In this document: positions 7,288-63,119 of the stretch, one piece after another | Position numbering within the stretch: position 1 is the stretch's first letter | Layout of the letters: the number at the start of each line of letters is the position of its first letter | DNA from: Lama glama | Lineage: Eukaryota | Direction: 5' to 3' | DNA: 64,000 nucleotides | NCBI GenBank assembly: GCA_028534125.1 | Contig: CM052830.1 | Span: forward strand, 20,770,001 to 20,834,000 | Position numbers and translations under genes: made by a program | The notes under the pieces: generated by a model | What the model was told of the DNA's origin: nothing | The model's database searches: none | Seen by the model: the letters and a program-made list of their open reading frames with translations, nothing else

Positions 7288-7507
7288 NNNNNNNNNNNNN
7301 NNNNNNNNNNNNNNNNNNNNNNNNNNNNNNNNNNNNNNNNNNNNNNNNNNNNNNNNNNNNNNNNNNNNNNNNNNNNNNNNNNNNNNNNNNNNNNNNNNNN
7401 NNNNNNNNNNNNNNNNNNNNNNNNNNNNNNNNNNNNNNNNNNNNNNNNNNNNNNNNNNNNNNNNNNNNNNNNNNNNNNNNNNNNNNNNNNNNNNNNNNNN
7501 NNNNNNN
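7288..7507. other. Assembly gap expected to contain the last CLK3 coding exon
   Basis: 220 Ns between CLK3 3' UTR sequence and the last intron. The kinase C-terminus after ...NCKPLK is not found elsewhere in the window. Confidence 0.8.
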
Positions 7508-10195: not shown

Positions 10196-10944
10196 GCCTC
10201 TCCTCACCCCAGCCCTCAGCAGTGGTGGGAGGAGGAGTCTGGCTTTTTCTTCCAAGCTCTGTCCCACTCCCACTGAGGTGGTACCCTGCCACTTGTCACT
10301 TTTCCCATCTGGCACTCAAGACCCTCACAGTGGTGTGGCCCATCTCTCCTAACATAGGCCCTCTCTTGACCAGAGTGAGTTTCAGCACTTGCCAGGCTCT
10401 GGGCGTCACTGAGCAGCTCACCTTGCTTGGAATGCCCTCCCCTGTCCCGTCCATCTATGCAGACCCTGCAGTCTAGCTCTGAGTCTATTCGTCGCCTCTC
10501 CGAGGAGCCTTTCTGACCTGTTCCAACCACTGCAGACCACACACAGGCACCACCAGATAAGTTCTTAAAAGGCTGGCAGACAGATGGAAAGTGATGGTGA
10601 GACAGAGGGTGTCTGTGTGGACAGGACCTGTGGGTGGGGTCTACCAGGTCAGTCTTCAGCCTTGTCATCCTGTGCAGGGAGGGTAGCTGGCCTAACTCTA
10701 CAGCAGCTCTTCCCGCCCCCTACCGAGTGCCTGGGGCAGAGGCCAGCTCAGGAGGTCCCTGGAGAGGACTCTCCATCCTCACAGATTCCTACCTGAAGGC
10801 TTTTCAGCCAAAGGGGTCCTGGTGTCTCGGGCCCAGCAGAACAGTTAGCAATACGCTGGAGCGAATTGGGGAAAGCGAGACCACCAGGTGACTTTGCTGC
10901 AGATACATGGATGCCCCATGCTCCTTTTGAGGGCGGAAACTTAC

Positions 10945-11111
10945 ATCTAAGGGCGTGGCAGAGCTGGTAGGCCATGTGCCGGACATGTGGTAGGGGGTAA
11001 GGCTGGAAGTTATTCTCCTTCAGGAACTCAAAGGTATTCTTGCCCAGAAGCTCAAAGGCGATGCACATGTGACCGTGGAAGTTGAACCAGTCAGACATCA
11101 GGACGCACAGG
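10945..11111 (-). CDS. CLK3: CLK3 exon 7
   Basis: ccAG|C acceptor, GAT|GTAAGT donor; (F)[55 protein letters not shown]. Confidence 0.97.
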
Positions 11112-11759
11112 CTGGAGGTCAAGGACGGGGCGGGGCTCAGGCTCCATGCTGGGGGCTAGCTGCCCCAGCCCTCCCCCTCGAGTGAAGCCAGTCCCCATTC
11201 CCTCCCAGGCCACTGGGTCACACACCAGGAGACCAGTACACGTGAAGACAGAACTGTGGGCATAACCCCTGCATCTCAGAGAAAAAGATGGAGTAACTCC
11301 AATACACTCCACAGAACTAGTGTTGCTTCTTTCAGCTCCCAGCTGAGCTTCCTGAGTCTGCAGGGCTCGGCACAGTGCTTGCAGAAGAGGAAATGTTCAG
11401 CATCTGTGCCACAGGCAGTTCTCCTTTGGACAGCTCTGACTACACGAGAACCCCAAACAGCTTCAGGCTTGTATCTTGTCTAATGTCCACCACAGCCCAG
11501 TGAGGCTCCCAGTTCACAAATGCAGGGCTAGGAGGCCGCCCTCAGAACACAGTGCTGGTTGTGGTGGAGGCTGGACTGAAACCCAAAGGTTCCCTGAAGC
11601 AAGACTCATCGCCAAACTCCCTGGGCTCGGTGCAGGGAGAAGGCGGGGGTGCCAGCCAGGTCAAAGGGTACTGCTCAGCCCCAGGGGGTTAGGGCAGTGG
11701 GGGCTGGAGTGGACACTGTCCCCCTGGAAGCTTCCCTCCCATTCCACGCCAGCACTCAC

Positions 11760-14280: not shown

Positions 14281-14896
14281 NNNNNNNNNNNNNNNNNNNN
14301 NNNNNNNNNNNNNNNNNNNNNNNNNNNNNNNNNNNNNNNNNNNNNNNNNNNNNNNNNNNNNNNNNNNNNNNNNNNNNNNNNNNNNNNNNNNNNNNNNNNN
14401 NNNNNNNNNNNNNNNNNNNNNNNNNCGCGCACTAGAGNNNNNNNNNNNNNNNNNNNNNNNNNNNNNNNNNNNNNNNNNNNNNNNNNNNNNNNNNNNNNNN
14501 NNNNNNNNNNNNNNNNNNNNNNNNNNNNNNNNNNNNNNNNNNNNNNNNNNNNNNNNNNNNNNNNNNNNNNNNNNNNNNNNNNNNNNNNNNNNNNNNNNNN
14601 NNNNNNNNNNNNNNNNNNNNNNNNNNNNNNNNNNNNNNNNNNNNNNNNNNNNNNNNNNNNNNNNNNNNNNNNNNNNNNNNNNNNNNNNNNNNNNNNNNNN
14701 NNNNNNNNNNNNNNNNNNNNNNNNNNNNNNNNNNNNNNNNNNNNNNNNNNNNNNNNNNNNNNNNNNNNNNNNNNNNNNNNNNNNNNNNNNNNNNNNNNNN
14801 NNNNNNNNNNNNNNNNNNNNNNNNNNNNNNNNNNNNNNNNNNNNNNNNNNNNNNNNNNNNNNNNNNNNNNNNNNNNNNNNNNNNNNNNNNNNNNNN
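14281..14896. other. Two assembly gaps with a 12-nt island (14426-14437), expected to contain CLK3 exon 4
   Basis: Exon 3 ends in phase 0 and exon 5 starts in phase 1, so an intervening exon of 3n+1 nt is needed. None is visible outside the gap. Confidence 0.8.
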
Positions 14897-16468
14897 CCGC
14901 AAACGCTCAGGAAGACGACCAGCCTCTGCCGCTGAGGGGCTGGGCCGTGTGGAGAGTCACAGCCCAGACTCCCTCCTCCGCCGAGTCTCCCCCTCCCCGG
15001 CCCCCCCGTGCTAGTGCGGCCAGGGTGAAGACGCGGAGAGAACGGCGCAAGAAGACGGCTGGCCCAGCCTGGGTCCGATCACCCAGAGTGGTCAGAGGCC
15101 ACTCTGGCTTCAGCTGCAGAACGCCCAGCCTGCCCTTGCCTGCCTCTGTTCGCCCACGCAGCCCTGCACAGGCCCAACAGCTGCCACCTGCCCCTAGACG
15201 GCACCTGCGGCCAGAATGAACATCACCACCAGAAACGGCCTTTCGTCAGCGGCCCTTGTGCCACCAGCCTCGAGCAGGGAGGGAGCCCCGGATCCTCTGT
15301 GCCAGTTGACCTCCAGGCCTACCACCACGATGGCCCGTGCAGGCCCCAAGCCAGCTCCTGCCCTGGCCTTGGCACCTACGCTACTCACAGGCCAGGCTCC
15401 TCCCGAGCCTCATGACAACAGAGGGCACCAAAGAGAGAGAAGCAGCAGAGCCACATACCTGCACCACCATCCTGTGGCAGCGTGCAGAGAGGCCACCAGG
15501 CCACGCCGGGCGCCCGCAGTCAACCCTCAACCCACGGCCACTCAAAGAAGTCACAGGAAAGCTGGGCAGAGAAGATGCCTGGCCCCCTCCACTACTCCTC
15601 AGGGGCCTCACGGCCGGGAGCAAGGGCGGGAGGGAAGCAGGTTGGGGAGAAGAGAAGACAGTATATACCCTCAGAGATACACAGCTGGCCTTTCTCCCCA
15701 GAGGCCTGAGCGCAGGTGGGCTCCGTCTCCGCAGAGAGCTATACGACCCTCCACGCTAAGAATGCTGCCAGGCCCTGCTCTGGGCATGTGGCCCGCAAGT
15801 GGGCAACGCCTGGAGCTGTGGGCCTTTCTGCCATTTCTTCACATGCCTCATCACACAGGCAGCTCGTCCCCTTCACCTTCACCGCCCCTCACATGAAGAG
15901 GCTAGGCTGAAGAGGGCCTGACTGGAGGTAAGAGGGAGCTCCCAGTCTGAGCTGAATGACAGCCGGCCCTCCCCAGCCCATGGGCGCTCCAGCCTCTGGG
16001 CCTTTGGGGAGGGGTGTGGAGGTGAGACTGCAGAGGTGGCTGCAGTCCACAGCAGTCAGAGTGCTCAGCTGTGTGTGGGGGCCGATCTCTGAGTGGGAAG
16101 GACCAGGCCATATGGCTCCAGACCACACACCAGCAACCTCATTAAAGATTCTGAAGAAGTGTCCCTGGCCACTTGCATCACGTGGCCTGTGCCTGAAGCA
16201 GTGTGGAGACAGACAGGCCGGGGGCCAGCCAGCGCCGGAACCAGAGCCCCTACAGCTGCCACTGCCCATGGGCCAGCAGATAAAGGAGCCAGGCCCCCTG
16301 CTCAGCCCTGCACCTGGACCAGACAACACAAACACACACACACATGCACGCACACCAAACTCGCGTGCGCAGAGCTGGCGGTACTCACCCAGACCAGCCA
16401 GCCTGAGAGAAGGCTAGAAAGAGATGAGGCCTTTAAGCCCCAGCCAGCACACTCTGGCTACCACTCAC

Positions 16469-16685
16469 CGAGGAGGCGCTGCTACAAGACCTGGTGCGGC
16501 GTTTGTGGCAGTGGTGGGCGTGCTTGCGGGTCCGGTACGGCTCCCTCTCCCGTGACCGCCGACGGTGATGGGAACGGGAGGATCCATAGCAGTCCTCTCC
16601 GAAGGACGGGCTCCGCTCTTCGTATCGGTACGCGTCGCTGTCCCGGGGCTCCCGGTATCTCCTCTGGTAGGGTAGGCGGTCATGG
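16469..16685 (-). CDS. CLK3: CLK3 exon 3 (RS-rich region)
   Basis: ttggcAG|C acceptor, TCG|GTGAGT donor; 217 nt encoding HDRLPYQRRYREPRDSDAYRYEERSPSFGEDCYGSSRSHHRRRSRERSRTGPASTP-type Arg/Ser-rich sequence ending ...SCSSASS. Confidence 0.93.
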
Positions 16686-17339
16686 CTGCCAAGACAGGGA
16701 CAGGGACACTGGGCAGTCAGGGCCGTTCCTCACACCAACCCGGTTCCTGCCACCAGGCAAGAGGCATGTGGTGGGGCCCCTGTAAAGGGCTCACAAGGGT
16801 AACCTGTTGGAGCAGAGGCACCCAGACTAGGGGCAGGGGGGTGGGTGGGAATGTGAAGTCCACCCTCCGGAAGCTCGGCCCCTTCAGTGCCACAGGAGGC
16901 AGAGCACTGGGGTGTGAGTGTGGTGGAGGGCCTGGAGGACCTACCACCCCAGGGCTCTCTGTGGCCTGCGGAGACTGTAATTTCAGGCTGGGGGCTGAGA
17001 AAAGACCAGGAACAAACCTCTGGAAAGGTCTGTGGTTATGTTCCTAATCCTCAATGAGAAAGGCTCTGAGGTTAGCAGGGGAGATGCCAGCCTAGAAAGC
17101 AGGGGAATGTGTCAGGAGAAGGAAGAGTCAAGGACAGAGAAAGAAGGGGCAGCAAGGTATCCAACCCTGAGGCCAGTGAATGCAGGGGAAGGGACGGGAG
17201 GAGCCTGGAGAGGACGAGGCAGCGAGTGGTCTAGGCACAGCTGGGCAGAGGGGCACCTGCAGGGGCCCAGGGCTGCCAGACTGTCTTCCTGGTCCAGACG
17301 TGGGAAGGCATCCTTTCTTCCCACCTAGTTCCCTCTCAC

Positions 17340-17491
17340 CTTCTGGACCGAGATCGCCGGGGTGGAGGCTCCCTTCGAGACGGGTATCGCAGTCTCCCTT
17401 CGTGCTCCCGACTGTAAGACCTCCTCCTCTTCCAGCGGTAGCTCAGGTATGGGTCTGGCTCAGGGGAGCGGTATCGCTTACAGTGATGCAT
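17340..17491 (-). CDS. CLK3: CLK3 exon 2 (start codon is the first base of the exon)
   Basis: ggcctAG|ATG CAT CAC TGT; MHHCKRYRSPEPDPYLSYRWKRRRSYSREHEGRLRYPSRREPPPRRSRSR; donor AAG|GTGAGA. Confidence 0.97.
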
Positions 17492-19420: not shown

Positions 19421-20649
19421 CAGCTTTTCATTAACAACATCAAAAATTAGGTTTCAGGTAACATCTCTGTGGGTATTAAATGCCTTAAGGGCATTATGGA
19501 TATTTTAGAAATCCCTTTCAAGGGACCAGAAGGGAGAGAGCTCTAGGTAGAAAACTGAACCAAATCCCACTGCTGCCACTTACTGACCTCGTGACCTTAT
19601 ACAAGTCACTCTAGACCTTGGTTACTATACCTGGAAAATGGAGATGACACCACCTCCCAGCCAACTTGGCAGAGAAGATGACAAGCATAAGAACTGTAAA
19701 ATATCACATACAAGGCAATCATAGAGATTATCTCTCCCTTAACACATTCTAGGCAGGTGGAATATTGGGAATACCAGATGCCCCTCGTTATCTTCCCAGT
19801 TAGGGCTCTAGGGCCCATTTCTCGTCAATTATCTCCGATTCTCTGAGACCCCTGCAAACGGGTTGTTAAAAGTTAAGGGCCACAATTGTGCTCTGCAAGG
19901 CTCTACTCTACACAATGAAGAAAAAGGTAATGTGAAGCAAACCAGGCTGAGGATGCCAGCTTTTCTCGGAGCACAGGCCTATCCGTCTTCTCATCCGCTG
20001 TTCCTGGCCAGAGAACCGGGTTGACAAGAAGAGCAGCCAGCCAGGTCAGCGGCTGTCCTCCGGAATCCCAGCCACCCCAGCGCTGCATGGTTATTTTTGG
20101 CTGACGCTGCCCCACCACTGCAACCTCAAACCTGCCACCTTGCAAGCCGCCACCACCAAGAGAAACGCTCCTCCTTTTCAAGGGCATGGAGGTGGGAAGC
20201 TGGAAGGCCGCCAACTCCGCCTCGACGGGGGCCTGGCTCAGGCGATTCCCATCCCAGCTCCACACCACGACACCCGCTCCCGGAACTAAAGCACAGAGAC
20301 TCCCGGACCGTGAAGCAGAATGTCAGCTTGGCCTAGCCCCTCCCCCGGGCTGGAGCGGCTCCACCATTACAACAAAATATGCGGGGGGCCTGCGGCCCTC
20401 GCTCACCCTTCCTTCCTGACGCCTCGGGTCCCAGAGATCTCAGAGCCCCGTCCCCCGTAACCGCCGCCAGTAGAAGCTAGGGAAGACCTTGGGGGAGGGA
20501 GGAGCAGGGGGAAGGCCAGCCGGAGCCGGAATCAAACTCCAAGACGCTCGGGGAGAAGTCGCCTGCGGACCAAGCCTCAAGCCAGGGGAAGGGGAGGGGG
20601 GTCTGAAAGCCCCTCCAGGCTATCCCAGGTAGGACCCCGACCCTATTCC

Positions 20650-22400
20650 GCGGGCAGGTGCAGGGCCTCAGAGGCCTCTTAGCCTCGGACTCCGACACGC
20701 AGGATCGAGAGGTCGGGGTCTGCGATGACCGCCCCCTTGGGGAGAAGCGGCGGGTCAGGGGTGAGAGGTTGGGGCCGCGGCCTGAGATGCGCCGAGAAGA
20801 AAACCAAAGGGAGTAGGCAGAGACCGAACCGGGAGCCCGGGGACCCACACCCAGAGCGCCTGCCCCGCCGACTCACCCCACCACCGCCACCGTCACCGAC
20901 GCGGGCCCGGGCCCCCCACTCACCGTCTCCCAGGCTCCGGCTGCGGCTAGGCCCCACTCCCCGCTCCGAAAGCCTCTTCCGCTTCCGGCTCCGGCCTCCG
21001 CCCGTGGCGGCCCCGCCCCTCGCGTGACGCAACCTTCGCCAGCCGGAGATCGACGCAGCTCCGCGGCTTGGCCGCTCTATCCCGCGACTCGAAGGTTCTG
21101 GAGGACCCGCCTTCTCAGCCGGGGTCAGAGTGGCAGCCGCGGCTCCCGGAGGGGCGAGGGCATGTCTCCGGCCGCGGCCCGCCCCACCGCCGTGTCGCGA
21201 CGCACGTAGGCCCCAAAGACGCGACGAAAGCTCAGTCCCCGGCTGACGGGCGCCGGGAGCCAAGAGGTGGAGCCTCGACCCCGCCCGTGCTCGCCCGTCC
21301 CTTCCTGCGCGCCGGGAGGAGGGCATTGTTTCGCAGTCGCCTTAGTGAAATCTGGGCAGACCCTGAGAACCCGCCCGGCCCCAGGGCCCCGGAGGGCGCT
21401 AAAAACCGCGGAGGTCTATGCGCCGAGGTTCGGAAGGCGGTCCCCACTCCCAGCTATGTGACAGAAGCAAATGAGACCTTCCTCTCTGTGTGTGTGGGGT
21501 CTTTAAAGCCATGGCGGCACGCTCCGGTGCACGTGCACAGCAGTCTGGGAAGACACCGGAGAGTCCTGTCGGCGGGCCCTCTGGAGGGACGGGGTCTAGG
21601 GGAAAGGGGAGGTCTCGTTTTCTTTCAGCAGCCGTGGAGCACGGCACTGAGCGGACCAGCATTGTTTCTTGGTTATAAACCCCCGCCACAGAGAAGCCCT
21701 GCGGCCCGCCGCAGACAGAAGCCGCTGCCATTTCTCCCCGGAGTCACTCGGCGACCCCTTTGCCCGGGCCCCAGCGTGGGCTCACCGAAGCCCCGTCCAC
21801 CTACTGTCCCGCGCTTGGTCAGGGCGGGATAACGAGGCTCTGTTTGCTAGATGAGGAAACCGAGGTCAGGTCCTTTGGGAGACCTCACGGCTTGTAAACT
21901 TGCACTCCCCGCCCCCGGGCTCTCGCTGGCGTCATTCAGCAACGCGAGCCGGAGCGACCTCTAATTGCCCCCACGCCACGCCAGGGCGGGAGCCGGAGGG
22001 AGCCAGCATCCCTCCAGACCCCGCCCCTCCTCCCGACCGCGCCGCCGGGGCGGCCAGGGTTTCCCCGGCCCCGCCCCGCCCCGCCCCAGCGAGGGCTGGG
22101 CACGCCCCCGGCGCGAGGCACCGCCTCCCGCCTCCCGCCCCCCAGGCGCGGTAGGAGTGGAGCCGCCCCCAGAGTGGCGGCGGTCTCTCCTGACTCTCAC
22201 TTAACCCAGGGTCTGACGGCGTGGCTGCAGCGGGTGCTTAGTGTCCCCCAAAATCTCCGTTAGTTCCGCCACCCTCACCGGAAGTACACAACCGAAGCAA
22301 AGTAAAAACAGGATGCTTGCTACACTATTGCAGCCTCAGGACCGGTCCCAGTCCCCTTCCAACCAATGCACTTGTCCCCCAATATAGAAATTCAGGAGCC
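20650..22400. promoter_or_regulatory. CLK3: CpG-island promoter of CLK3 (possibly bidirectional)
   Basis: Very CpG-dense. Tandem ETS cttccgcttccgg (20976-20988), GC box (~21011-21019), CRE-like gtgacgca (21024-21031), (gcccc)n GC-box run (~22068-22087), ETS ccggaagt (22278-22285), CCAAT (22363-22367). Confidence 0.85.
20924..21000 (-). other. CLK3: CLK3 proximal first exon (5' end approximate)
   Basis: Strong donor GAGACG|GTGAGT inside a CpG island. Preceding sequence reads ...SGEWGLAAAGAWET, as I recall for the human long-isoform junction. Confidence 0.8.
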
Positions 22401-25400
22401 GCTTCTAGTATACAGTTAGTGATCGAGAGCCCAGCTGTCCCCGGCCCTAGATCCCGCCCCTTTAGGATCCTGCCTCAAGGGTCGGAGATTCTGAGTTGCC
22501 ATTCCTGCCTGGGCTGCGGCCACATCAGCCAGGTTTCATCCAAGGGTTTCATCCAGTAAGACGAGGTGAGAGGACTCCGGTGTCTCCTCTTCCTCCTACC
22601 ACTTCGTGTTGCCCGCGGTTTCCATGGCTCCTGGAAGCCAGGATGGCTTGGGTAGCTGAAAGCAGAGGAGCTCAGAGGGGCTCCTGTCCCCAGCCCTGAC
22701 AAAGTGCTAAGTTCTGAGGAGGTAAGTCGGGCTTGTCTTCCCACCAGCCCTCCCACCACCGAGAACCCAGAAGTCCTTTCCTCCCAGTAAAGAGGCAGAG
22801 CACTCTTTTTCAGAAGTAGAACAGGAGCCATCTCCTGGCTCCCTCTCTAAAAACTGTAGTTCAGCAGCTATCCTGCCTGAAATTCTTCCATTAGAGCTTC
22901 ATTCTTTGTCTTTTTGTTCCTAAAAGAACTCACACCTAGAAGAGAGACAGAGTATGAGCCACTTGGAAACAGTGAAGTAATTCCCCCATCCCCAACTCAT
23001 CCCACCTCACCTCCCTCAGCCCTCCAGTGCTGGTTGGCTGAGACCTTGGCAACTGGTAGCTGGAGGGATCAGGGGCCAGGGCCACATTCAGAGGAGGTTT
23101 GCTCCACGCTCTCTGCCCATCAGGCCCAAGTTCTTTGTCCAGGCCTCAACCCATGTGCCTGCCAACTCTTTTCTGTGTGGGTTGAGGACAAGGAAATGTC
23201 CCTGCCCTGCACCTGCCACCAGCCACCTGAGCCCCACAGCAACTCTTGTTGCCTTTGATTTCCCTTTTGCCCCCCTGGGCTCCTGGCTCCGCTCACCTCC
23301 CCCTCTAGGTCCCAGCTTCTCTGATCCCCTCTTCGTCCTGCTGGCCTTGCTCTCTTCTGTCTCCCACATCTATCTTTGCCTTTTCCAGGGGCGGATAATT
23401 CACCTTCAGAACTTAGCCCCAGGGTCACCTCTCTGGAAAGGCTTCCTGGGACCCCCAAGTGATGATCAGGTTCCCTTCCTTGTGCTCCCATAGGACTCGG
23501 TGGCTGTGTTTTCCTCTGTGCTGGCTTCGAAAGCTCAACAGCCTGGCCTGTGCCACTCCCACTCCAGCAGACCATGAGCACCCAGCCCCAGCCAAGTCAG
23601 GAAAGCTCAGGTTCTCAGTAGGGGCTCGGGGCTGCCCGTAGAGAGCCCCTGCCTCTAAATGGGAAAGACAGAGCATCTAGGCAGAGTGCACCTGGGGGTG
23701 CCGTGCCAGGGCGTGGGAGGTGGGGGCCGGGCCCAGTCCTCGTGTTCCATTTTGGAGACGCCTTGTGTGGTGGTGAAATGCTGGGGAGACAGCTCAGCAG
23801 GGAGCTCAGGAACCTGAGCCTGGAGTCAGGGGAAAGGAGAGAGTCAAGGTGTGTGGAAGGTAGAGGGCCTGGTGGGTGGTGGTATAAACCTGAGCAGGGA
23901 ATTCGTCAGGGAATGCGAGGAGTGGGCAAGTCAGTTATGGCTCAGGGGCCCCATCTTACAGCTGAAGCTATGAAAGCCAGAGAGGTACTGGAACAGTGAC
24001 TTAACCTGAGGGCTTCTGACCCCCCACATACAGTAAAATACAGTGTCCCCCCCCAAATTTTCCCCTGACTTTTGCCGTTTCTAGACTCCCATACTGGGAA
24101 GGAGAGCAGCAGGGGTGGAGGAACATGGCCTGGTTCACAGTGGACTGACTACCTGCATGACCCAGGGCAACTGACTTCCCCTCCGAGCTTCAGGCCCCCA
24201 CCCCAAACCTGGGAGGATCAAATGAACCCGTTGGTCAGCAAGTGGCCGGGACAGAGTCAGTACCCACAGATCATGGAAACTGTTCGAACTGAGAATTGTT
24301 TAGTGAGGTTGGGGCTAGTGCTTATTTGAGATCTGAATCCCCAGGGAGAATCTTGTACCAAAGGTTGGAGTTAAAGGGTTTAAATGCACACTTGGCCCCA
24401 GGGCCTCGGTTTCTACATCTGAGGAGGGGCTGGTGCTCTGGGAGGGCAGGTGTGCCCCAACTCCAGGGTCTCCCCTCTGTCCTGCTCTCAGGACCCACTG
24501 AGGCAGAGCCCCATGGACCTGATGCCTGGCCCTGCCTGCTTTCCCCAGCATTCCTGTCACCTCTGGCCACTGGACTGTGTCTGCTCACTGAGGCCCACTG
24601 AAGGATGCAGATGGGTGTAGGGAAGATGGGCACAGCAGTCCCTGGGGCTCGGGCCAAAGCCTGGCTCCTTTTTCCCTGGCAGGTGCTCAGATAGGACCCC
24701 TGAGCGGGCCTGGAGGTGGTCAGAGAAAGACCAGTGGGTGTGGCTGGCAGAGAGCAGGTGGCAGTGGGCCAAGCTGGCTGGCCACCTCTGGGTGGCACTG
24801 GAGGCCCCATCCAAGCAAGCACAGGTGCTGCAGAAACGGGAGGGAACGCAAGCTGGGAATCGGCAGGGCCCGATGGGAGCCGCTGGCTCTGAAGCGGAAA
24901 GTCAGGCCCTGATCCTCTTCCCCAGTCTTCCTTGCTTGTTCACAGCCCCAGCGTGGTCCTCAGAGCTAGCAAGTTCCCCTTACTAGGCTGAAAACTCCAG
25001 AATGCTCAGGGCTGGTGCCCACGTCTGGTATCATGTTCTCAGGAAGAAGTCTTGTCGGGGTCTGGGGCATCCAAAGGAGACAGACGGGAATTGATTCCCC
25101 AACAGGGCTGCCATGTTCAAAGTGTCATCTCTGTGAATGGCACCTCTGGAGGTGTGTGGTGCATTACCTGGTGTGGCTGGGAACTGTCGACAGAAGCAAA
25201 GAAAGGGCCAGAGAACCTGTAGCCTCCCCACTCCCCTCAAGAGTCAGAGGGAAGGAGGTGGCTAGTTTTAACTCAGTGGATAGAAGAGTTTCCTTAGAAG
25301 CCCAGCCACCCCTGGTGAAGCTTCTATCCTCAGGGAGGAAGAGAGGGCTATGCAAACTGAGGCTCCTACGGGAGGTACCCAGCATCCCTGACCCAAGTGA

Positions 25401-27037
25401 GGATATGGACAGTACCACCCTATGATGGCCCAGATACCTCAGCCTTTAGTGACCTGGGGGTCTCAGTCCATAGCTGACCCTCCTAGAGCCATTATTCCCT
25501 ACCAGGCTGGGGACCCAGTTGACATGCCTGCCACTCTCTAGCATTCCACAGCAGCATCCCCTGTACTCTTGCTGGAGCACCAAAGCCATCAGGAGCTGGG
25601 CTGGAGAGGTGATGTGTCTCAGGTCCAGCTGGAGGTGAAGGGTTGTACATCTGGAACCTGTAGTGATAACAGCTGGGCAGCTTCCCAGAGCCTTGAGGCA
25701 CAGTCCCATGTGTACAAGTCAGGGCACAGGTCCATGCTGGGCCCCCAGCTGGGCTTATCACAGCTGGTGAAGCAGGCAGGACCTCGTGGAGTCAGCCTGC
25801 TTTATCAGGGGTTGCAGACACTGCCCTGCCCAGGGTGGGGGATCCATGTTTTGAGGCTGGTCCTGCCCTCTCCAGTGGCTCATGCTGCCTCTAGCCCTCC
25901 CCCAAGTAGGTGGATTGCTCCCTGGCCTGCCTGGAGCAGGAGAGGCACCAACTATGGGGATCCCAGGGACAGAAGGAGTGGAGGAGGCCAGACCAGGACA
26001 TGGAAGACAAGTGAGGGTGCCAGGAGTGGGGGAGGAGTGGGGTGGCAGAGGATGGGCAGACAGTCTCTTCTGCCTCCAGTACCCTGCTACTGCAGATAGA
26101 AGTGGAAAAGGCCCAGTGGTTTTTCGACAAGATGAGCCGACAGCCCCTTGACCTGGAGCCCAGCCTGAGGACCCCTGGAGTAGGGATGACCAGAGCCCTC
26201 CTCCAAGTGGGTGCATGGCAGGGCCCGTGTCCAGCCCTGCCCTGTACTTCATCCGGGTCATCAGTCTTGGAGCAGCAGCCAGGGAAGGAGGGCAGTGCAG
26301 GGGCTTCTGTTCAGCCCAGAGGGGATGCTTCTCTCCCTAACATTTGGAAAGAGCTTGTGATCACCCAACTGGCTCCTCTTCTGCTTCAGATGGGAAAACA
26401 GCCCAGAGGGTAGGGAAGAACTTGTTCAGGGTCATAACACTGTGGTTGGAAACTGGGAGGCGCCCCCTGGACTGAGCGTAGCTGCAGGAGATGCTGAGAA
26501 GCAGAGATGGGATGGCATCGGGACCCAGGCACTTCAGGGCTCAGAGAGAGTCTTGATGGGGGCAGCTGAGAACCCTGCATAGGCTCAGGATACAACCCAC
26601 CTGTGGGAGCGGCCGCTGATGCTCACCCAGGTGGGTCAAGACAGCTGGCAGGCTCAGCCCTGCAGGGAACACAGGGCATGAACTGAGCCAGGCTGTGCTT
26701 ATCTGTGCCAGGAGGGCAGAGCAGCAGGTGAGCCTGGGCCCTCGTCCTTGGAGGATTCTGAGGGACCACTGAAACAGCACCCTCTGCTGGTGGACACCCA
26801 GGTACTGTCCAGACTTAAATCATTTGGTCTGGAGTCGGGGGAGCCCCTGTGGGCTGGGTGGTCAGAGGCGTCCTGGAAGGGTTGAGTCTCAGAGGACGTG
26901 GAGGTCAGGAACGCTGGGAGGAGGGGGCTGCGTCAGTAAAGGCCTGTGGGCTAGCTTGAGCAGATAGATCTCAGTCAGGTGAGCCCCATGGCCCTGAGGC
27001 TAAGCCATGACTCTGGGTGGAATGAGGGTCTTCACAG

Positions 27038-27197
27038 GTGAACAAGAGACTCTTGGAAGAGCTGGGTCAGAGTGACCAGTGGCTTGGGGCCTGCCTGGAG
27101 CAGCTGCAGCAGTTACAAGGAGAGAAGCTGGAGTTGGAGCGCTGTGCACAGGCCCTGGAGGCAGAGTGTTCGGTTGCTTGGGGAGAAGTCGGTGCAG
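27038..27197 (+). pseudogene. Coiled-coil exon remnant
   Basis: tcttcacAG|GTG acceptor, CAG|GTAGCA donor; VNKRLLEELGQSDQWLGACLEQLQQLQGEKLELERCAQALEAE, then a probable frameshift into VRLLGEKSVQ. Confidence 0.65.
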
Positions 27198-28955
27198 GTA
27201 GCAGTGCTGGGGGCGGCCCTGGGCCAGGAGGCCTGGCAAGTGGCTGCTGGGGCCCACCTCTCAGTGTCCAGGCCCGGTTGGAGTGGGGGTCCTGTTCTCA
27301 CACTGGGTGAGATGGCCTGTGGGCAGGAGGTGGGCCAGCCTCTGTCACAGATATTGAGGGGAAAGGCCCAGAGCCCCAAACCCTAAGTCACATGGCCAAA
27401 GGCAGACTCTCTTCCCCAGGAATCAACACTCCTGGCTGTTACAATGGCTCCCATATGGGAGCATGTGGGAAATCTGTCCGCTTCAGCAAGTCCTGTCTCC
27501 CCTACACATGGCTGAGCCCCTCCTGCTGGCCCAGGGCCAGGCTGGGGAGGTGAGATAACCTTAGCTGCTGGGCTCACTGGGATGCTTGGGAGAGGAACTG
27601 CTCAGGACAGAGGGTTGTGTGTGTGCAGGGAACCATGAAGGAGGCATCTCTGTCCCAGTCTCCAGCCCAGCTATCAGATTGTGGTGAGGACATCCATGCA
27701 ACTTGGACAGGAATCATTGAAAATGGGTGAAAACAAGGTGTGGGTGATCTGAGGTCCATGCTGTGCCTAGACCACCTCATTTCTACTAGCACACTTCAGC
27801 TCCAGGAGGTACAGTGCCCCACTGGAAAGAGCCTGGAGGAGGAGGAATCACATCCCAGGCTTCATGAGAAGGCGTCCAAGTACAGGTGGCAGCTGCCCTG
27901 AAATTTAAAGAGGAAGAACTGCAGGGACTCCAGAGGCCGAATGCAGCCTGGCCTCCCCAGGCGCCTACACTCTGTCCACCCCTTTCCCTCCCCACCCACA
28001 GCTTCCTCCTCCCCATTCTCTTCCCTACCGCCCAGTCTTTCCTGCTACCTGCCAGTGAGTCTCTTCCGACTTCTTAGGATCCGCCCTGACTTTATCTTAC
28101 ACTTCCTTCCCTTCTGCCTTTTCCTCCTTGAGCTCCATCAGTCTCCACTCATTCATTAGCATTTACTAAGCAGCTACTACAGGTCTGGCCCTCTTCCATA
28201 CACAGGAGAACCAGAGTCCAAGCAGATCACTCCCTGGCCCTGAAAGTTTCTGGTTTGGGGGCACATAATCATCAAGCATGATTTATGAGTTAATGTGCCT
28301 GAAGAGGGGAAGGGCATTATGGAAGCTGAGGAGGGCTCACTGGGGTGGGGTGAGGTGGGGACCACCTGGGGTCAGATGACCCTAAAGTCTTCCCCCAGCC
28401 TGGTACCAGGGACCTAGTACAAAAAAGCAGGTGGTCCAGGCTCTGCCAGAGTCACCCGCCCCTTCCTCTCATGGGGTCTCAGCTTCCCAGTCTGTATGAT
28501 GGGTAAACTCCCTGCCCTGGTCCCTGTATCACCTGGGGGCTCAGGGCCAGGGTATGGGGCCTTCTGGACTCAGGAAGCCCATCTGCCCATAAATGGACAG
28601 TGCAGGGAGACAGGGGAGGATCTGGAGACAGAGGGGGCTTAGGAGATGTGAACCTGCCCTCAGGAGGCTCTCGGACTGGATGGTATTAGTCATACAAGGA
28701 ACACTGAGGGAGGGTCACCCACCAATATTTTTGGATTTAGGGAAAATTTTTAGTCACCTGTCAGTTTTGCAGGGAAGAAAGAGGCCATCTTGCTCCTCCC
28801 CCTCAGTGCTGTTCCATCAGCCTCTCCCAGCACCTGACAGCCATCTGTCCCTTCTTTGGGTCAAGGTGTATTCCCAGGCAGGCCCCTGTGAGAATGGAAC
28901 CAGACCAAGATAGGAGCCAACAACCCCCCACCCCCATTCCCAGACTTCCCTGCAG

Positions 28956-29072
28956 GTGGGCTCCGAGCTAACCCAGATGCGGGCTAAGTGTGAGAAAGTC
29001 TGGGACGTGCTGAAAGCTCGGGACTCAGAGCTGGACGCTCAGCAGCTGGCCCTAGAAGGCGCCCGGAACCAG
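28956..29072 (+). pseudogene. Intact 117-nt coiled-coil exon of the same remnant gene
   Basis: cttccctgcAG|GTG acceptor, CAG|GTGCTC donor, phase 0-0; VGSELTQMRAKCEKVWDVLKARDSELDAQQLALEGARNQ. Confidence 0.65.
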
Positions 29073-29569
29073 GTGCTCACCACTGCCCCCACCACTGGCC
29101 TCTGCCAGGCCCATGTGCCGAGGGAAGGACCCAGTCTCCCCTGCCCAATCCCTGATCACAGCATGGCCACTGGCTTTCCCTCCCCAGAGTCAAGTCCCTT
29201 TCGGGCTCTCACCACCACTACCCCACTTTCCTTTGCTTCAGCCCCAGGGTACCTGGGTGTGAAGGGCTGTTAGAGAGAAACGTCTTCCCTCACAGAGATG
29301 CTCACCAGGCCCCACAGCTCCTCCTCTTCCCCTGAGGATCGGGGGCAGGTGGCACGGGGCATTTGGGGACATGCTGCCAAGAGAGGCCTCTCATTCCCTG
29401 GGGTGACATTGCTGGGCCAGGGGCCTGATGTGTCTCTCCATCTGCCTTCTCTCTGAAGAGGGAAATCCAGGGGAAGAAGCAGGAGGGGTGTGGCTAGGTG
29501 GGCTCTGGGGGCACGGGGAGTCGGGACGTCTGGGTTCCTGGGCCTGGGCTCACAGATTGAAGGAGAGTG

Positions 29570-29750
29570 GCCTTCAGAGCCTAGAAGTCCTGGGCTCAGG
29601 TCAGCTCTACCACCAACCAACTCACTGAGCAATAGCAAGTCTGACTTCTCTAAGCGTCAGTTTCCTTATCTGCAAAATGGGGATACTGACACTACCTAGC
29701 TCAAAGGACGAAGGGAGGATTACACAGGACAGTGCATGCTGCATGGTGCC
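29570..29750. mobile_element. MIR SINE fragment
   Basis: gcaagtctgacttctctaagcgtcagtttccttatctgcaaaatggggatactgacactacctagctcaaagg. Confidence 0.65.
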
Positions 29751-32399
29751 TGTTTCCAGTCCCCCTGAGCTTCCTGACCCCTGGGGTCCAATTTGGGTGT
29801 CAGTATCAAAGCCATAAAACCAAAGGGGTGTGCCCAAGGCCAACTACTTGTGGCGCTTTAGTCACAAAGTCTATTTATCCAAATGTTCCACAAACAAGGA
29901 ATTGTTTTCACTTCTTATTAAGTTCAGGAAACAGTTTGAGATAAAGTGCCACCATCAGTGATACACAGTGTAGCACATTCCAGGGCCTGGAGCCTGAATA
30001 CTGTCTATGCTCGGATACTGTTTCACTCTGACCAACAGCCTCTTCTTTATGACCCTGCATGGAGGAACTTGATGGGGTGGGGGCTCCCGTCCTTTGCCTC
30101 AGCTGCTCTCTGGGAACCCCAAGGGAAGGGGTCAGATCCGTCAGTGCACCCTCAGGCTGAAACTGTCCTCAGGGAACAGAAACTGATGCAGCTGTGAGCA
30201 TCAAGGATTCCAGCACTGGGAAGACAGGAACGGCCAGCCACCTCTCAACCCCTGAAGGTTGGGGATCCTCTAGAGGGGCAGTGGGAGTGACCCCTGCCCT
30301 GTGAGAGCCAAACCCAGCTTCTCTCTCTGCCTTTGTCTCCCCATCTACAAGTTGGAGGGGAAACAGGATCAAAGGGCCTTTCCAGCATGGGTCTTTGCTG
30401 GTTCTGGATTCCTCAGCTGGTTTCCCCCTTCCCTGCCCAGAGCTGGAGCCACCCCATACCTGGCCCCTGCCCTGCCTCTGTGCCACTTCTCCTCCATCTG
30501 CTCCCAGATCTTAGCCACAGCCCTGGAACCACAGAAGAGAGGAGCATCTGAGAAAAACTGGCAGTCAGGGGCAGTGCTCAGGCTGGGGAACAAAGGCGGT
30601 GTGGAGATTGAGGTCCCGAGCCACCAGGGAACAGCTTCATAGTCTCACTCTGCAGCACAAGAGAATAAGGTCAGCCTCAGTCCATCCCTGGACTGACAGG
30701 CCTCAGAGAACCAAGGACTTCTGAGGAGAGGGGAGGCCCCTGTGGCTATGCCTTTAGCCCCCAAGGCCAAGATGTTCTTAGGGCCTGAGGCCTATTATAG
30801 GTAGCTGCAGTCAGAGGCTGTCCTTGTCCCCACCTGCCAGGAGGCCTAAACTGCTCATGTTGGCAAAAGGTTTCTGACTCTCAGTAGATGAGGCCATCTG
30901 GTCCTTTCCCAGGGAGGACCCTGTGGCTAGGAGTAGAGCTGGGCAGATAGTGGCCAGTGGGGATGCTGGCATCCTTGCGGGGCTTCGTTGGCTCACTGAC
31001 TGCCCCAGTGCCAGCAGGGTGATGACTAGGGACCCTGTGTCTTACTGGTGAAGGCCTTGGGCACTGGACATTAGACTTCTCAAAGTGAGTTCTCATCTAC
31101 TTGTGCTTCATGTCACTCTACAGTCTCCATTTCACAGACAAGAAACTGCCCAGAGAAGGTCAGTAATTTGCCATAGGTTACACAGCAAAACAGCAGCTAA
31201 ACGCCCTGTTTCCCTAACCTGTCGCAGAAAGGTGGTTTCTCATTTCACACTGCCTTTTCTGAGCTTGACAGCATGACCACCTTCAATGGCCATAGGCCAG
31301 GCCAGCTTAGGGTTGACATCCTCCTTGAGGTCCTCTGGCCAGTTTTCTTTTTCTGAACTTCCCTCCCTATCCTGCTGTGTGGTTCCCTCCCCTACAGAGC
31401 TCTGTGAGCTGGGCCACATGCCCCGAGAGTCAACGGTGTCACTGAACATTCCCTCTATCTACTGCCTTGAGTGAAGCCAGGTTTTGGAGACGGGGGCTCT
31501 TGTGGCAGGGTGAAGGGCTGTTTCCCCAGCATCGTCCTTTGCAGAATATACTCTGTCCCACTGCCATCCACATGGCTGCTGTGGGGGCTGCCAAGTTCTC
31601 AACTGATTGATTCAGCACTGGATACTGAACCCTACTGAACCAATGGGCCCCTTCCTGGGATCACCGGACTTGAGACAAGAGTAATCTTTCCAGAGCTGAA
31701 GACTGGGCACATAAAATGGGGGAGCTGTCAACTGCCTTATTTTTTTCTGTGGAAAAAGCTGGATTTCAGTGACAGCCAACAATTCCCAGAAAGTGGAATT
31801 GGGATGGAGAGGTTTTGGTTCAGTCCAGGGCATCTCTTGCATGGAGAAGATACAAACTTGACCTTTGGGATGGTCATCTCACCTTGCTCTGTGGCTCAGG
31901 AAAAGAGAAATACCTTCCACGGGCAGTGCTTCTGGGTTCCAGACCTTCCTGAGGCCGGCTCCAGGCCCTGCTGCCCTCGGGCTCCTCCACACACCCAGGG
32001 GTCGGAGAGTAAGTGTCCTTTCTTTCTGCTCACGTGAGCCTGAGTAGTTGGGGTCCCTCGCCAGGGAAACACCCCCACCCCTGATTTGGGGGTGTTAGAA
32101 GGCGGCCCTCCTGCCCTGAACGAAGGCCCTCCCTGGAAGCCAGGCATCACCTCTCCACCGGCTTACTCTCAGTTTGTATCCCTAGCAGAGGGCCACTCCC
32201 CCGCCCCGTGGCCTCCTTGTGTGTCCCTGTCTCCCAGCTGCTGCCGGGGCGGGTACCTCACTCTCTTCAAGCGCAGCGGGACCCCGCACTCTTCCCAGTC
32301 CTGCTTCTTTGGTGGTTTCCTCCTCCACTTCGTTCCGGGGGTGATTACAAACCTTCTCTTTCAAAAGGCTCAAGCCACCAACTCCCTCTTTCTTCCGGG

Positions 32400-38770: not shown

Positions 38771-40165
38771 CTGGGGACAAGGGAGACAGCAGGCCCCGTC
38801 AAGCCTTCCAGGACTTCTGCTGTCCTCTCTGAGGCTCTCCCACCCTCCTGGCCTGGCCACAGCAGACTGAGGCCTCCCAGCATTAGAAGGTATCTGTATA
38901 ACCTTCTCTTGAGTTAAGTCTTGAAGGAGAACCAGGCCAGCCAACGTCCTACTGCTTGCTTTCTCCACTGAACGACTTCACTTTGCCAACTCCCTCTACT
39001 CTTGGAGAAAAGGGATCACACAGGCAAGGAGGCTGACCTCGGCTGCTGGCTGTGCACGGATGCTTTCAACACGATTCAGCAAACCCTGCGCACCCACTAT
39101 CCATCAGACTGGTGGTGGTGGATGAGAGGGGGACTGGAGATCAGTAAGACCCAGTCCCTGACTCTGAGGACTCACCTTGCCTCCTCTTCCCCTTAACTGG
39201 GCTGGGAGGTCCTCAAGGAGAAGGGCACTCCATCACAACCGGAGCACCTGGGATTCACAGAAGGCTGCAGGCGCTGGCTCACAGGGCCTCTGCCTGGCTC
39301 ACCCTAGACCTTTTAATTATCCTTTCTCACACTGAGAGCCAAGAATTCTTCCAGATTGGCTGCCTCATCTATTAGCCTCTGGCTTGTGCAGGACCAGGGG
39401 CACCTGGCCTGAATGGGTGACAGGGCAGAGCCCTACTGTCCAGGCCGTTACCTCTGGCTCCCTTCGGCTCCTCGCCCAGGGGAACAGGGAACAGGGAGGA
39501 GCTGCCTGGGAGTACACACGGCTCCTTTCACACCTGATTCTTCCCAACACGGCCTGCTCATGTTTGTTCTCAGGCAGAGTCAAGGGCGAGAATGGCAAAG
39601 AAAATGTGTGTGAGGGGGAAAGGGGAGAAAGGGGAACAAGGGACCCAGAGTGTGTGGTTTAGGGGCCAAGAAGGTGGGGCACCTGAAAAATGAGGAGGGG
39701 AAAGGAAAGATGTCAGTTATGCTGCCAAACTTGTATTTCCTCCTTCTCGCTCTTCTGAGGGTCAATGGTAGCCCGGCCCGAGGCGGCTCTGGCCCCTCAT
39801 TGAGCCTCGAGAAAGGAGGCGATGCCTTCCTCCCAGATGGTGAGCTCCTGGGTTGAAGGGCGACCCCTTTAATTGAGACGGATCAAAAGGCGGGAGGGAC
39901 AGGGAAGACACAGCAGCTGTCCCTGGAGGTCCCTGGCTCCTCCTCCTTGAACAACTGCCTTTCCTTTCTGCTAGAGAACAGGGCACCACCTGAGGCCATC
40001 TCTGGTCCCCTGGAAAATGGCCCTGGCTTGGTGAACTGAGATCTCTGTGGTTACTGAAGCCCCAGGTGGCTCTCTGACCTCTACACCCTTCTAGGGACCT
40101 GGATGCCCCCGGGATGTGAACAGGCCCTCGAACAGAGCTGGGGGCCGCACGGGGCTGGCGCTCAC

Positions 40166-40420
40166 CCCTGCCGTTGATCCTGATCTTCATGGGCAGCTGG
40201 CGCGCCATGCTGAGGAGGTTGCGCTGGAAGGCCTGCTGCACCAGGCGCTGCTCCTCCTCCGACAGCCTGGACGCCTTCTTCTCAGGGGGCTCCCCTGACT
40301 CCAGCCGCTCCCGCAGATGCTCCAGTGTGGCCGTCCGGGTACCGGCCTGCTGGCCAGCCAAGGTAACGGGCACAGCCAGGCGATTTGGCACGGGCACGGT
40401 TGTCACTGGGACTCCATCAC
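40166..40420 (-). CDS. ARID3B: ARID3B exon 7 (REKLES-alpha, here RERLES)
   Basis: ttgtcAG|GT acceptor, AGGG|GTGAGC donor; DGVPVTTVPVPNRLAVP...LEHLRERLESGEPPEKKASRLSEEEQRLVQQAFQRNLLSMARQLPMKIRINGR. Confidence 0.96.
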
Positions 40421-40537
40421 CTGACAAAGGCACCAGGGCTGGACCCAACCATAATCCATCCTCCCACTTGTGTCTTCGACCCGGGGAACTTGGCGCCCTT
40501 CCTCCCTGCCCTCCCTCCTCCCAAGGGCCCTGCAGAC

Positions 40538-40815
40538 CTTTCCTGAGAGTGGCTGCTGGGGATATCCGAGGGCCACTGGCATTGGTGCCACTGCCGGAGC
40601 CCAGCCCGAGGATGGGGAAGCGGATCTTGGGTGGAGAGAGGAGAGCAGGGGCCCCGGCAGCAGCAGAGGTAGCCGCGGGCGAGTAGCCAAAGAGGGAGGA
40701 GCTGTAGCTGGGCCGCCGGCCCTCCCTCCGGTTGCCGTCGATGGCTGCCTGGAGCTCAGCCGGGGAGCTCAAGGCCTTCTTCTCGCACTCGTAGGCATAG
40801 AGATACTTCATGTAC
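40538..40815 (-). CDS. ARID3B: ARID3B exon 6 (end of extended ARID domain)
   Basis: ttcAG|G acceptor, AAAG|GTCTGC donor; YMKYLYAYECEKKALSSPAELQAAIDGNRREGRRPSY...ISPAATLRK. Confidence 0.96.
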
Positions 40816-41669
40816 CTGAAGGGAAGGGAGGAAGGAGCTAAGGAGAGCCATCTAAATCACGGCACCAGGACGGCCCAGCTTAAGTCAGCAGGTCTCTGGA
40901 GGCGGCCTGTGCGGGGCAGGCTCTGTCCCGGCGGATCACAGCCTGGTGCACTTGGCCAGAGAGGGAACTCTGCGTGGCTGGACACCTCGCCAGGCCCTCT
41001 GACCGTGGCCCAGTTCTAAACACGGCTCAGACTGGAGGCATCGTTCATGAAGAGAAATAAACACCTTCGCTAATGTTTCATGTTTGCACGGCGCTTCCAG
41101 GGCCCTGCGAGAAAGGAGGCCCGTTTTGCAGTGTCTTTCTGGCTCCTCGATCTCCCAATGGTTCTGAGTCAGGCTGTCTCACAGGAGCACTTCTCCCCAC
41201 TCTGTGCACTTCGGAGAGCTGGTCCTCTTTGTGTCAGATGCCCCACGAAGCAATTCTCGACCCAAGAACCTTGGGAGAAGAACTATTATGCTGGCTGTCC
41301 CTCTGTCTCCAGTTTCTGCTCCAACAGATAAAACCCTCTACTTTTCAACAAGCCTGAACCTGCCACCTAACCCACAGGGAGCTGCTCCTGCCACACTCTT
41401 CACAGAGTGATGCCCAGAGTTCCGAAAGAACATCTTCCCCTCTGTCTTCATCCTCCAATGTCACTCTTGCTCTCACTGCTTCTCTCACCCTGGTAATTAA
41501 CTCAAATGGTTACAAGAATAGGTTACCAGTCCCAGAGGGGCCTGACTGCCTGCCTTCCTCCGGGTCCATGGTTGCTGGGCAAGCTGAGTGGTGGGTGGGA
41601 AGGGCCAGGCTTAGGGTGGGGGTACTGTGTGGGAGACGATGTCCTGGAAAGAGAGTGGATTTCAGAGAC

Positions 41670-60400: not shown

Positions 60401-63119
60401 AATCTGAATCTTATTGTGAGAAAGGTAGGTTCTGATGGAAATGGAGAGACATTAGGTAGGGGATCAAGCAGGAAGCCTTTGAGCACTAATGAAGAGAGAT
60501 CACTGTCTCTGGGGTGCATGGGGGGTTGCCAAGACCAATCCCACATCCCTGGAGGAAGCCAGGTATGGCAGCTGGCAGCAGCAGGAGCCACAGGCTCATC
60601 GCCAAACTTGCAGTGAGGAGAAAGGGAGACATCTAACCAGCGTCTCTTGACCCAGGAAAGCTACCTTGGGCCTCTCTTTTTACTGGGATTTGGGGGAAAA
60701 AAAAAAGGCCAAGCCAGACCACGCCTCTAAGATCTTAGGAGCCAGCACTGCATTCCTTAGAGCTCTACCNNNNNNNNNNNNNNNNNNNNNNNNNNNNNNN
60801 NNNNNNNNNNNNNNNNNNNNNNNNNNNNNNNNNNNNNNNNNNNNNNNNNNNNNNNNNNNNNNNNNNNNNNNNNNNNNNNNNNNNNNNNNNNNNNNNNNNN
60901 NNNNNNNNNCCCCAAGGCAAGAGTTAACCCTTTCCTTCAGATTTAAAGCACAGAAGCTAAGCTACTCACTCTTCACTTGAGCTCCCCATATTCTGAAACC
61001 TCTAAGAAACTACCGTCCTTAGAACACCATCAGAGACGCTACAACTTTTATAGAGATTCTTGAGTATTCTCTGAAGACACAGAACAGTCATGTTTTCCTT
61101 CTGTCTATGCTCCATAACCTAATAGATTCTGAATTCCACCTAAGGCTCATATCTGGGCAAATTCCTAGGACCTGACCTCAAAAGTAGTCATTAGTTAAAT
61201 CACTAAACTTCAAAGGGCTGATCCCAAGCTCATGGATCCTAGTCAATAACTCTGAAATACAAAACGTAACAAAAGTCTTCAGGCTGAATCTTGCTGTTGT
61301 TAGTATTGTTACTACTTTTTAAATAAGCTGTAAACTATCTTTTCTTGAGTCAGCCCTGTGGCTCCGTAGGTGCTACCTATGCCACGCTTGTGACTACTAC
61401 TGGACAGGCTGATGATGCTGTGATGTTAAAAGTCCAATTCCCAGATCCTGGGAGGAAGAAAAGAAAAACATCTTTGCCTTCCCACCAGTTTTAACTGATC
61501 CCAGGAGGTAATGAGACATGCACAAGGGGGCAATGGGCAGGATTATAAGCAAATCCTAAGAGGAGAGAGGAGCCCCAGGAAGTAAAACAGATACTGTTAT
61601 AACCAACACTGTTGGACTACAAAACCCTCCTGATAAGATCAGGATTACTGCTCTTAGCTCAACCGCTCAGGCCTTGGAAGCACTAGAGTTATAATTATCA
61701 GATGTACACCTTCCGCTGTCAGGTAACTTTAGCAGGAACCCGAAAGCATCTCCCTACCTCTTACTAGCAACAAAGATCAATTCAAACTCGGTGGCTTGGA
61801 AAAAGAGCCAAGGGGCCCTTTTCTGATAAAGCAGTGGAAAGGAGAAAGGGTGGGGGTAGGGGTGGAGGAAGAGGTGGCAATCCTACTTTTCCATCTAGGC
61901 ACACAGTCACTTCCAAGAAATAATCAAGAAGACTGCCCAGAAATGGGGTGTTCCTACAAAAGGAGGAAGAAAAACTAAAATGCGCTGTTGGTAATGAGGA
62001 CACCTCTATGCCACAGAGTGAACTGGCCCGGCCAAGTCTAAGCCTGACCGCCACCGAGGAAAGGCCCAGCCCCCTGTCCCTCCGGAATTTGAGCTGATAG
62101 CACTGCGTATTCCGCCGTGAGCTACCTACCACCTGAACCTCCATAATGGCTGCTGACAGCCCTTCACAGCACAGAGCTCGGGGGGTCAGCGCTGGAGAGC
62201 CGAACGTGAGAAGCCCTCACCCGACCCTCTCTGACAGGCAGGGAGACCAAGACCCGAGGCTGGGAAGCCCGCCCAACGTCAGTGCTTCAGGAAAGTTTCA
62301 TAAAATTTCTTTTCTTCAAACTACATATTTTAAATGCATAGGAAGAACGCATTAAAAAAATGCCATGATGAATTATTTTATAAAGTGAAAAAGAAAAAAG
62401 TCAAGTTTGAGGTTCCACAGAGCAAGTCCCCTCAGGCAGAACACAGTTGCACTTCGTATTAAAAGCCAGCCCTGTTTACAGTTTTGAGAGCTTCTCTAGG
62501 CCTGCTTCCAACCCCACACCCCCAGCCTGGAGGTGGCACTATGCTGTACACGCTCCAACTCTGATGCCAGCTGCCCCGCCCTGTCCCCGTGCCCCAGGCT
62601 GAGTGTCTCGAATGCGGACAGCAACTTACTCCTCTGTGAGGCCTGTGTACCTGGCACAGGGCCTGGCAGATGGTAAGGACTCAAATGAATGTCAGCACCT
62701 GAAGAATAAGCCACAGGAACAAACTTCTGAGAGTCACTGCAGCCTAAGTGATGAATTTGGGAGGAAAATACATACTTAAAAGCAGGTGGGCTTTGAGTTC
62801 TAAAATACAACTCCATAAAAGGAAACTAGAAGGCAATAGAAGCCATTTTCTAAAGAAAGCAGTTTAATTTTAAGGTTCAAGAGGATAAAAGAGTGAGCAT
62901 CCTCCCACCCCCACCCCTCGATTCAGCAAAAAAGGAGCCTGTTATTCGTACCTAAACTTAGCAAAGCTTTAAAAAAATGATAATATTCAATGATAACAAG
63001 GGTTGGGGCAATGGGATCTCCTATATTCCCATAGCAAAATATAAAAATGGCATGACCTTTTCTGAAAGTCACCTGCCTTAAAATGTCCATTACAATAAAA
63101 ACAGCAGCAGCAGCAGTAA

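Follow-up and report, generated by a model that had tools for sequence, protein, structure and literature searches.

Probable remains of an undescribed coiled-coil gene beside CLK3 in the llama genome

Introduction

Mammalian unitary (unprocessed) pseudogenes retain their introns and accumulate disabling mutations at single-copy loci that remain intact in other lineages. Losses of fast-evolving coiled-coil genes are common, and one more would not surprise a specialist. Here we analyzed 64,000 nt of llama (Lama glama) DNA from contig CM052830.1, referred to as the window, in which the + strand at 24513-30642 very probably carries an unprocessed pseudogene of an unnamed placental-mammal gene. 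An earlier note, made from the letters of the window alone, had proposed that a coiled-coil gene in this interval is either an unprocessed pseudogene or only barely surviving; colinear protein hits, together with frameshifts, stops, and an apparently lost splice donor, now bear this proposal out. A sequence-only reading had thus found a real, unannotated gene remnant, for which we give corrected exon borders and a list of lesions.

Results

Colinear matches to predicted mammalian proteins

Proteins predicted in elephant, armadillo, and sloth matched the window in ten colinear + strand blocks, which span 24513-30642 and follow one another in protein order (tblastn, E 1e-28 to 2e-9). As targets for these comparisons we used the window pieces flanking 25908-25951 on either side. 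When the window translation was aligned to the elephant protein in a frameshift-aware manner, 266 of the 429 aligned residues were identical (~62%). The ten blocks are separated by 70-1100 nt, and AG acceptors and GT or GC donors are found where the protein alignment breaks. Since exon order and intron positions are retained, the window copy is not a retrocopy. The test that the earlier note had set beforehand as confirmation was a set of colinear hits to one protein, and this is what the proteins of armadillo, sloth, and two elephants provide.

These relatives were found with exons searched singly, the joined spliced model being kept out of the searches. A word search using the stop-free stretch around the exon at 27038 returned one Logan open reading frame (ORF), P0001, from a very close relative. 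An exhaustive protein search with P0001 (exon 6 of this close relative) as the query then returned P0006 (688 residues), P0004 (330 residues), and P0003 (303 residues) at 64-71% identity, and these matches are NCBI Gnomon models from armadillo, sloth, and African elephant. P0006 is isoform X5 of armadillo (Dasypus novemcinctus) LOC101429923 (XP_058150474.1), formerly auto-named CCDC102A and in NCBI nr now "uncharacterized"; the sloth (Choloepus didactylus) model is LOC119531774 (XP_037689361.1), and that of the African elephant (Loxodonta africana) is LOC135227265 (XP_064123345.1). A word search with P0006 added more armadillo isoforms, the Tibetan macaque model LOC126959305 (P0025), and an Asian elephant (Elephas maximus) protein of 691 residues (P0024), auto-named "ciliary rootlet coiled-coil protein 2 isoform X2," which is 53% identical to P0006 over 85% of the query. 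The armadillo, sloth, and elephant Gnomon models have open frames of 303-751 residues.

Corrected exon model

The protein mapping places the following exons in the window:

24513-24610, + strand: exon 1, beginning with an ATG common to armadillo P0006 and ending in phase 2
24683-24900, + strand: exon 2, a helical block placed by tblastn, 48/71 residues identical to elephant
~25906-26010, + strand: exon 3, donor gtgagg at 26011; 5' end near 25906-25910, from the ORF 25910..26014 only
26080-26206, + strand: exon 4, acceptor between 26079 and 26080
26488-26630, + strand: exon 5, placed by tblastn and frameshift-aware alignment
27038-27235, + strand: exon 6, the best conserved helical block, 48/65 residues identical to elephant, with a GC donor (gcaagt)
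27790-27960, + strand: exon 7, placed by tblastn and frameshift-aware alignment
28956-29072, + strand: exon 8, the C-terminal helical block of 117 nt, phase 0 to 0, tblastn E 2e-13
30156-30257, + strand: exon 9, placed with its splice context, the weakest of the matches (13/34)
30508-30642, + strand: exon 10, the last, tblastn E 2e-9, 26/45 residues identical, ending with TAG at 30640-30642

The first exon is identical to elephant at 22 of 32 residues, and exons 1 and 2 reach a tblastn E of 1e-28 against P0024. The continuation of exon 2 over 24844-24900 scored z 4.4-9.8 against the orthologs, with only 0-2 of 500 shuffles as high. For exon 3, the 3' part from 25952 onward is matched by P0024, P0004, and P0006 (tblastn E 1e-11), and its split codon joins in phase to exon 4, where an LLLQ.EVEKA motif is common to elephant, armadillo, sloth, and macaque. 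Exon 8 is lesion-free and identical to elephant at 26 and to armadillo at 29 of its 39 residues, while the TAG that closes exon 10 lies six codons ahead of the elephant stop. In the middle of the armadillo and elephant proteins, 150-180 residues that are poorly conserved even between these two species find only one weak match in the window, at 28511-28744 (tblastn E 0.006).

How do these borders compare with those proposed before? On re-reading the window, the translations of the ten segments in the earlier note were as written and most segments had AG/GT borders, but the statement that most are in phase 0 fails for the corrected model. Seven of the segments correspond to real exons, among them 27790-27960 (with a frameshift) and 28956-29072 (intact). 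Several others proved to be real exons with one end misplaced: 24683-24842 runs to 24900 after a 1-nt insertion, 26096-26206 has its acceptor 16 nt farther upstream, 27038-27197 extends to the GC donor after 27235, and 30156-30197 continues through a TGA to 30257. Of 26583-26727, the part up to 26630 is exonic, but the exon starts at 26488, the supposed "tag" acceptor is an in-frame TAG stop, and the sequence after 26630 is intron. The possible segment at 30521-30670 overlaps the last exon, but its quoted peptide was in the wrong frame. Conversely, 22694-22721 found no support as an exon in the protein mapping, and 25542-25634 aligned at chance level (z -0.8 to 1.1), the true counterpart of that protein stretch being 24844-24900. 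Absent from the earlier list were the start-codon exon at 24513-24610 and the exon ending at 26010.

Disabling lesions in the window copy

No fewer than seven changes disable the window copy: its reading frame shifts four times and meets two premature stops, and one splice donor reads AT. Following exon 1, the intron starts with "at" and not "gt" (donor context ATGCAG/atgggt); because the residues of the orthologs join exactly at 24610/24683, an ancestral donor would have stood at the end of exon 1 and, judged from the proteins, has probably been lost. Exon 2 carries the 1-nt insertion at ~24843, and exon 5 is hit twice: its frame shifts within the first codons (~26491-26495), and an in-frame TAG at 26580-26582 replaces a Gln present in all orthologs. 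Farther downstream, a frameshift interrupts exon 6 at ~27165, and exon 7 lacks ~6 codons and is shifted near 27881, which brings a TGA at 27899-27901 into frame. In exon 9, a TGA at 30195-30197 stands where elephant has Arg. Exons 1, 3, 4, and 10 are internally lesion-free.

In addition to these lesions, several Arg residues of exon 2 that are common to elephant, armadillo, and sloth are Trp or His in the window. Such Arg-to-Trp/His changes, of which there are many, would, like the Arg-to-TGA change, be the expected product of CpG decay in the absence of constraint.

The exon 6 frameshift is a special case. In the intron that follows (27236-27560), the read-through translation is identical to P0001 over 62 residues, whereas exon 6 itself differs by two residues and an indel. 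Because the intron read-through is identical over this length, P0001 would come from a very close relative or from another individual. On this comparison, the frameshift would be very recent, polymorphic, or an assembly error.

Copies in other mammals

Broken copies were found in camelid, macaque, and several other mammals. The ORF fragments P0005, P0007, P0008, and P0009, which come from other mammals, likewise change frame inside exon 6, though not where the llama copy does. Fragment P0019 stays open across the entire exon as far as the predicted donor, where it ends. Compared with P0005, exon 6 is ~67% identical and the adjoining intron read-through ~55-60%; constraint in exon 6 is therefore weak or absent.

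A further Logan ORF, P0002, from a somewhat more distant relative, covers 28680-29267. It has an 8-residue insertion near 28895 and a Gln at the position of a window stop just upstream of exon 8. Between P0002 and the window, exon 8 differs at 1 of 39 residues and its flanks at ~10 of 80, which hints at residual conservation of exon 8, with numbers too small to rely on.

The macaque model P0025 is chimeric: its first part lies on the + strand within the CLK3 5' region, and exons 3, 4, and 7 of the decayed gene follow. Beyond these exons, its pieces map to the window at 51-79% identity:

16333-16629, + strand: macaque P0025 piece
17329-17445, + strand: macaque P0025 piece
20709-21210, + strand: macaque P0025 piece
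31591-31743, + strand: macaque P0025 piece

The first three pieces lie antisense within the CLK3 5' region, and 31591-31743 is found past the last exon of the decayed gene, in the direction of ARID3B. A CLK3 coding exon on the opposite strand probably explains why identity is high at 16.3-16.6 kb. This arrangement suggests that macaque LOC126959305 may be a long antisense or bidirectional transcript in primates that reuses old exons.

The ancestral protein and the names attached to it

The protein predicted in elephant and armadillo has ~690 residues. An alignment of the elephant, armadillo, and sloth proteins is unbroken, and the helical blocks, which correspond to exons 2-7 and 8, are well conserved. 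An AlphaFold2 (AF2) model from a five-sequence alignment placed long helices at 97-171, 177-209, 259-331, 362-394, and 551-630 with a predicted local distance difference test (pLDDT) score of 60-80, the overall pLDDT being 46. On this model, the protein has long helical, coiled-coil-type blocks (~97-209, 259-331, 362-394, and 551-630), joined by linkers that are poorly conserved and probably disordered. A crude heptad filter, applied to the 64 kb in all six frames, gave seven hits, three of them inside segments of the earlier note; exons 6 and 8 were among the hits.

Neither single exons nor full-length ortholog models gave a Pfam match above threshold, and the PDB yielded no match by sequence (single exons) or by profile. 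Neighbors in the ESM Atlas shared few features with the query and were a mixture of coiled-coil families of centrosome and testis; no family was assigned from them. We also considered identity with CROCC2/rootletin, as the Asian elephant name would have it; P0024, P0006, P0021, P0022, P0004, and P0003 gave no hit to Rootletin (PF15035) in Pfam at E up to 1. CCDC102A was absent from the matches of the P0001 and P0006 searches, whose length and word limits leave a distant relation possible. The names CCDC102A and CROCC2, both automatic, are thus not supported. A literature search found no paper on a CLK3-ARID3B pseudogene or on the four LOC identifiers.

Locus setting

The decayed gene lies between two minus-strand genes. 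A CLK3 kinase exon is found on the minus strand at 10751-11155 (best PDB match CLK3, E 6e-35, then CLK2, CLK4, and CLK1), and the minus strand at 39765-40856 encodes the end of a Dead-ringer/ARID3-type ARID domain. This ARID3-family gene is presumably ARID3B, given the known adjacency of ARID3B to CLK3. One further feature lies on the CLK3 side:

20000..22200, no strand assigned: CpG-rich CLK3 promoter region, GC 0.67 in 20001-22000, from which the decayed + strand gene diverges

The interval from 22.7 to 30.7 kb thus has the CLK3 promoter at one end and the 3' side of ARID3B at the other, and the + strand gene is for this reason head-to-head with CLK3. This is the orientation that had been claimed before: CLK3 and the ARID3-family gene are both on the minus strand and the decayed gene is on the plus strand. 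Runs of N, either assembly gaps or masked sequence, occur at 7288-7507, 14281-14425, 14438-14896, and 60770-60909, within CLK3 and on the far ARID3B side.

Discussion

We consider it very likely that the window holds the dead copy of a gene that was once intact. Several observations weigh against this reading and should be set beside it. The elephant and armadillo proteins are automatic predictions without experimental backing; the donor loss and the polarity of the indels are deduced from protein comparison only; the exon 6 frameshift is absent from the near-identical P0001, in which the exon reads on in frame; and of the words sampled from 24500-30400, 35-41% are present in RNA sequencing (RNA-seq) runs of one study, labeled "reproductive system metagenome," and up to 29% in those of another study. 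The locus may therefore still be transcribed, the word content being compatible with transcription and uninformative on strand or splicing.

Could the gene still be alive? The lesions would then be assembly errors, or alternative splicing would skip them and yield a shorter coiled-coil protein; an intact exon 8, four further exons without internal lesion (1, 3, 4, and 10), the missing frameshift in P0001, and the presence of part of the locus in RNA runs would all fit. We nevertheless regard this as quite improbable, since seven independent lesions of three kinds are spread over 6 kb, both stops fall on codons that specify Gln or Arg in the orthologs, exon 2 shows widespread Arg-to-Trp decay, and exon 6 is no better conserved than its intron when compared with P0005. 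A locus that never encoded a protein is very improbable to our minds. It would be a conserved antisense or bidirectional long non-coding RNA, with the elephant, armadillo, and sloth proteins as spurious ORFs of the annotation pipeline, a view in keeping with models that are all automatic and unnamed or inconsistently named, with the plainly chimeric macaque model, and with the lack of any Pfam match. It has to contend with ORFs of 688-751 and 691 residues over about ten exons, which stay open and colinear in both Xenarthra and Afrotheria (53-57% identity), with conservation concentrated in heptad-rich helical blocks; neutral sequence would not stay open over ~2 kb in both lineages. Long stop-free stretches are common on both strands of this GC-rich DNA, and two of the previously proposed segments aligned at chance level, yet the notion that all the segments are chance ORFs or repeat-derived is scarcely credible, being refuted by the colinear protein hits with E down to 1e-28 against a 14-kb target.

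If the window copy is indeed an unprocessed pseudogene, no full-length protein could be produced from it. Its remaining activity would probably be non-coding transcription diverging from the CLK3 CpG island, a view suggested by the macaque model, whose antisense start lies inside CLK3 and in which three of the old exons recur.

The gene is dead here and apparently open in elephants and armadillo, which offers a specific instance in which a gene loss among placental mammals may be dated. For the parent gene there are only automatic "LOC" models, and these are inconsistently named. As a tentative and rather doubtful extension, an undescribed placental gene may survive only in Atlantogenata (elephants, armadillo, and sloth) and have decayed once or repeatedly across Boreoeutheria. 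In that case, its lesion pattern would serve as a new rare-genomic-change marker, and the gene product in the surviving lineages would be an uncharacterized coiled-coil scaffold that may belong to reproductive tissue.

Among known systems, CCDC102A and CROCC2/rootletin are likewise long alpha-helical coiled-coil proteins of similar size, to which the Pfam, PDB, and Atlas searches showed no similarity at family level. Among transcripts of antisense or bidirectional-promoter type, macaque LOC126959305 is the example at hand: its + strand start lies in the CLK3 5' region, it reuses exons 3, 4, and 7 of the decayed gene, and its ORF is chimeric. The elephant, armadillo, and sloth Gnomon models have open frames, whereas in the window copy a donor is lost, the frame shifts four times, two stops come prematurely, and the central region is not detectable; exon order and conserved helical blocks are nonetheless the same in both. 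With its introns retained and its disabling mutations accumulated, the llama locus resembles the unitary pseudogenes of other mammals and differs from them in that its parent gene has no name, literature, or known function. This is ordinary gene loss, but of a gene that nobody has described.

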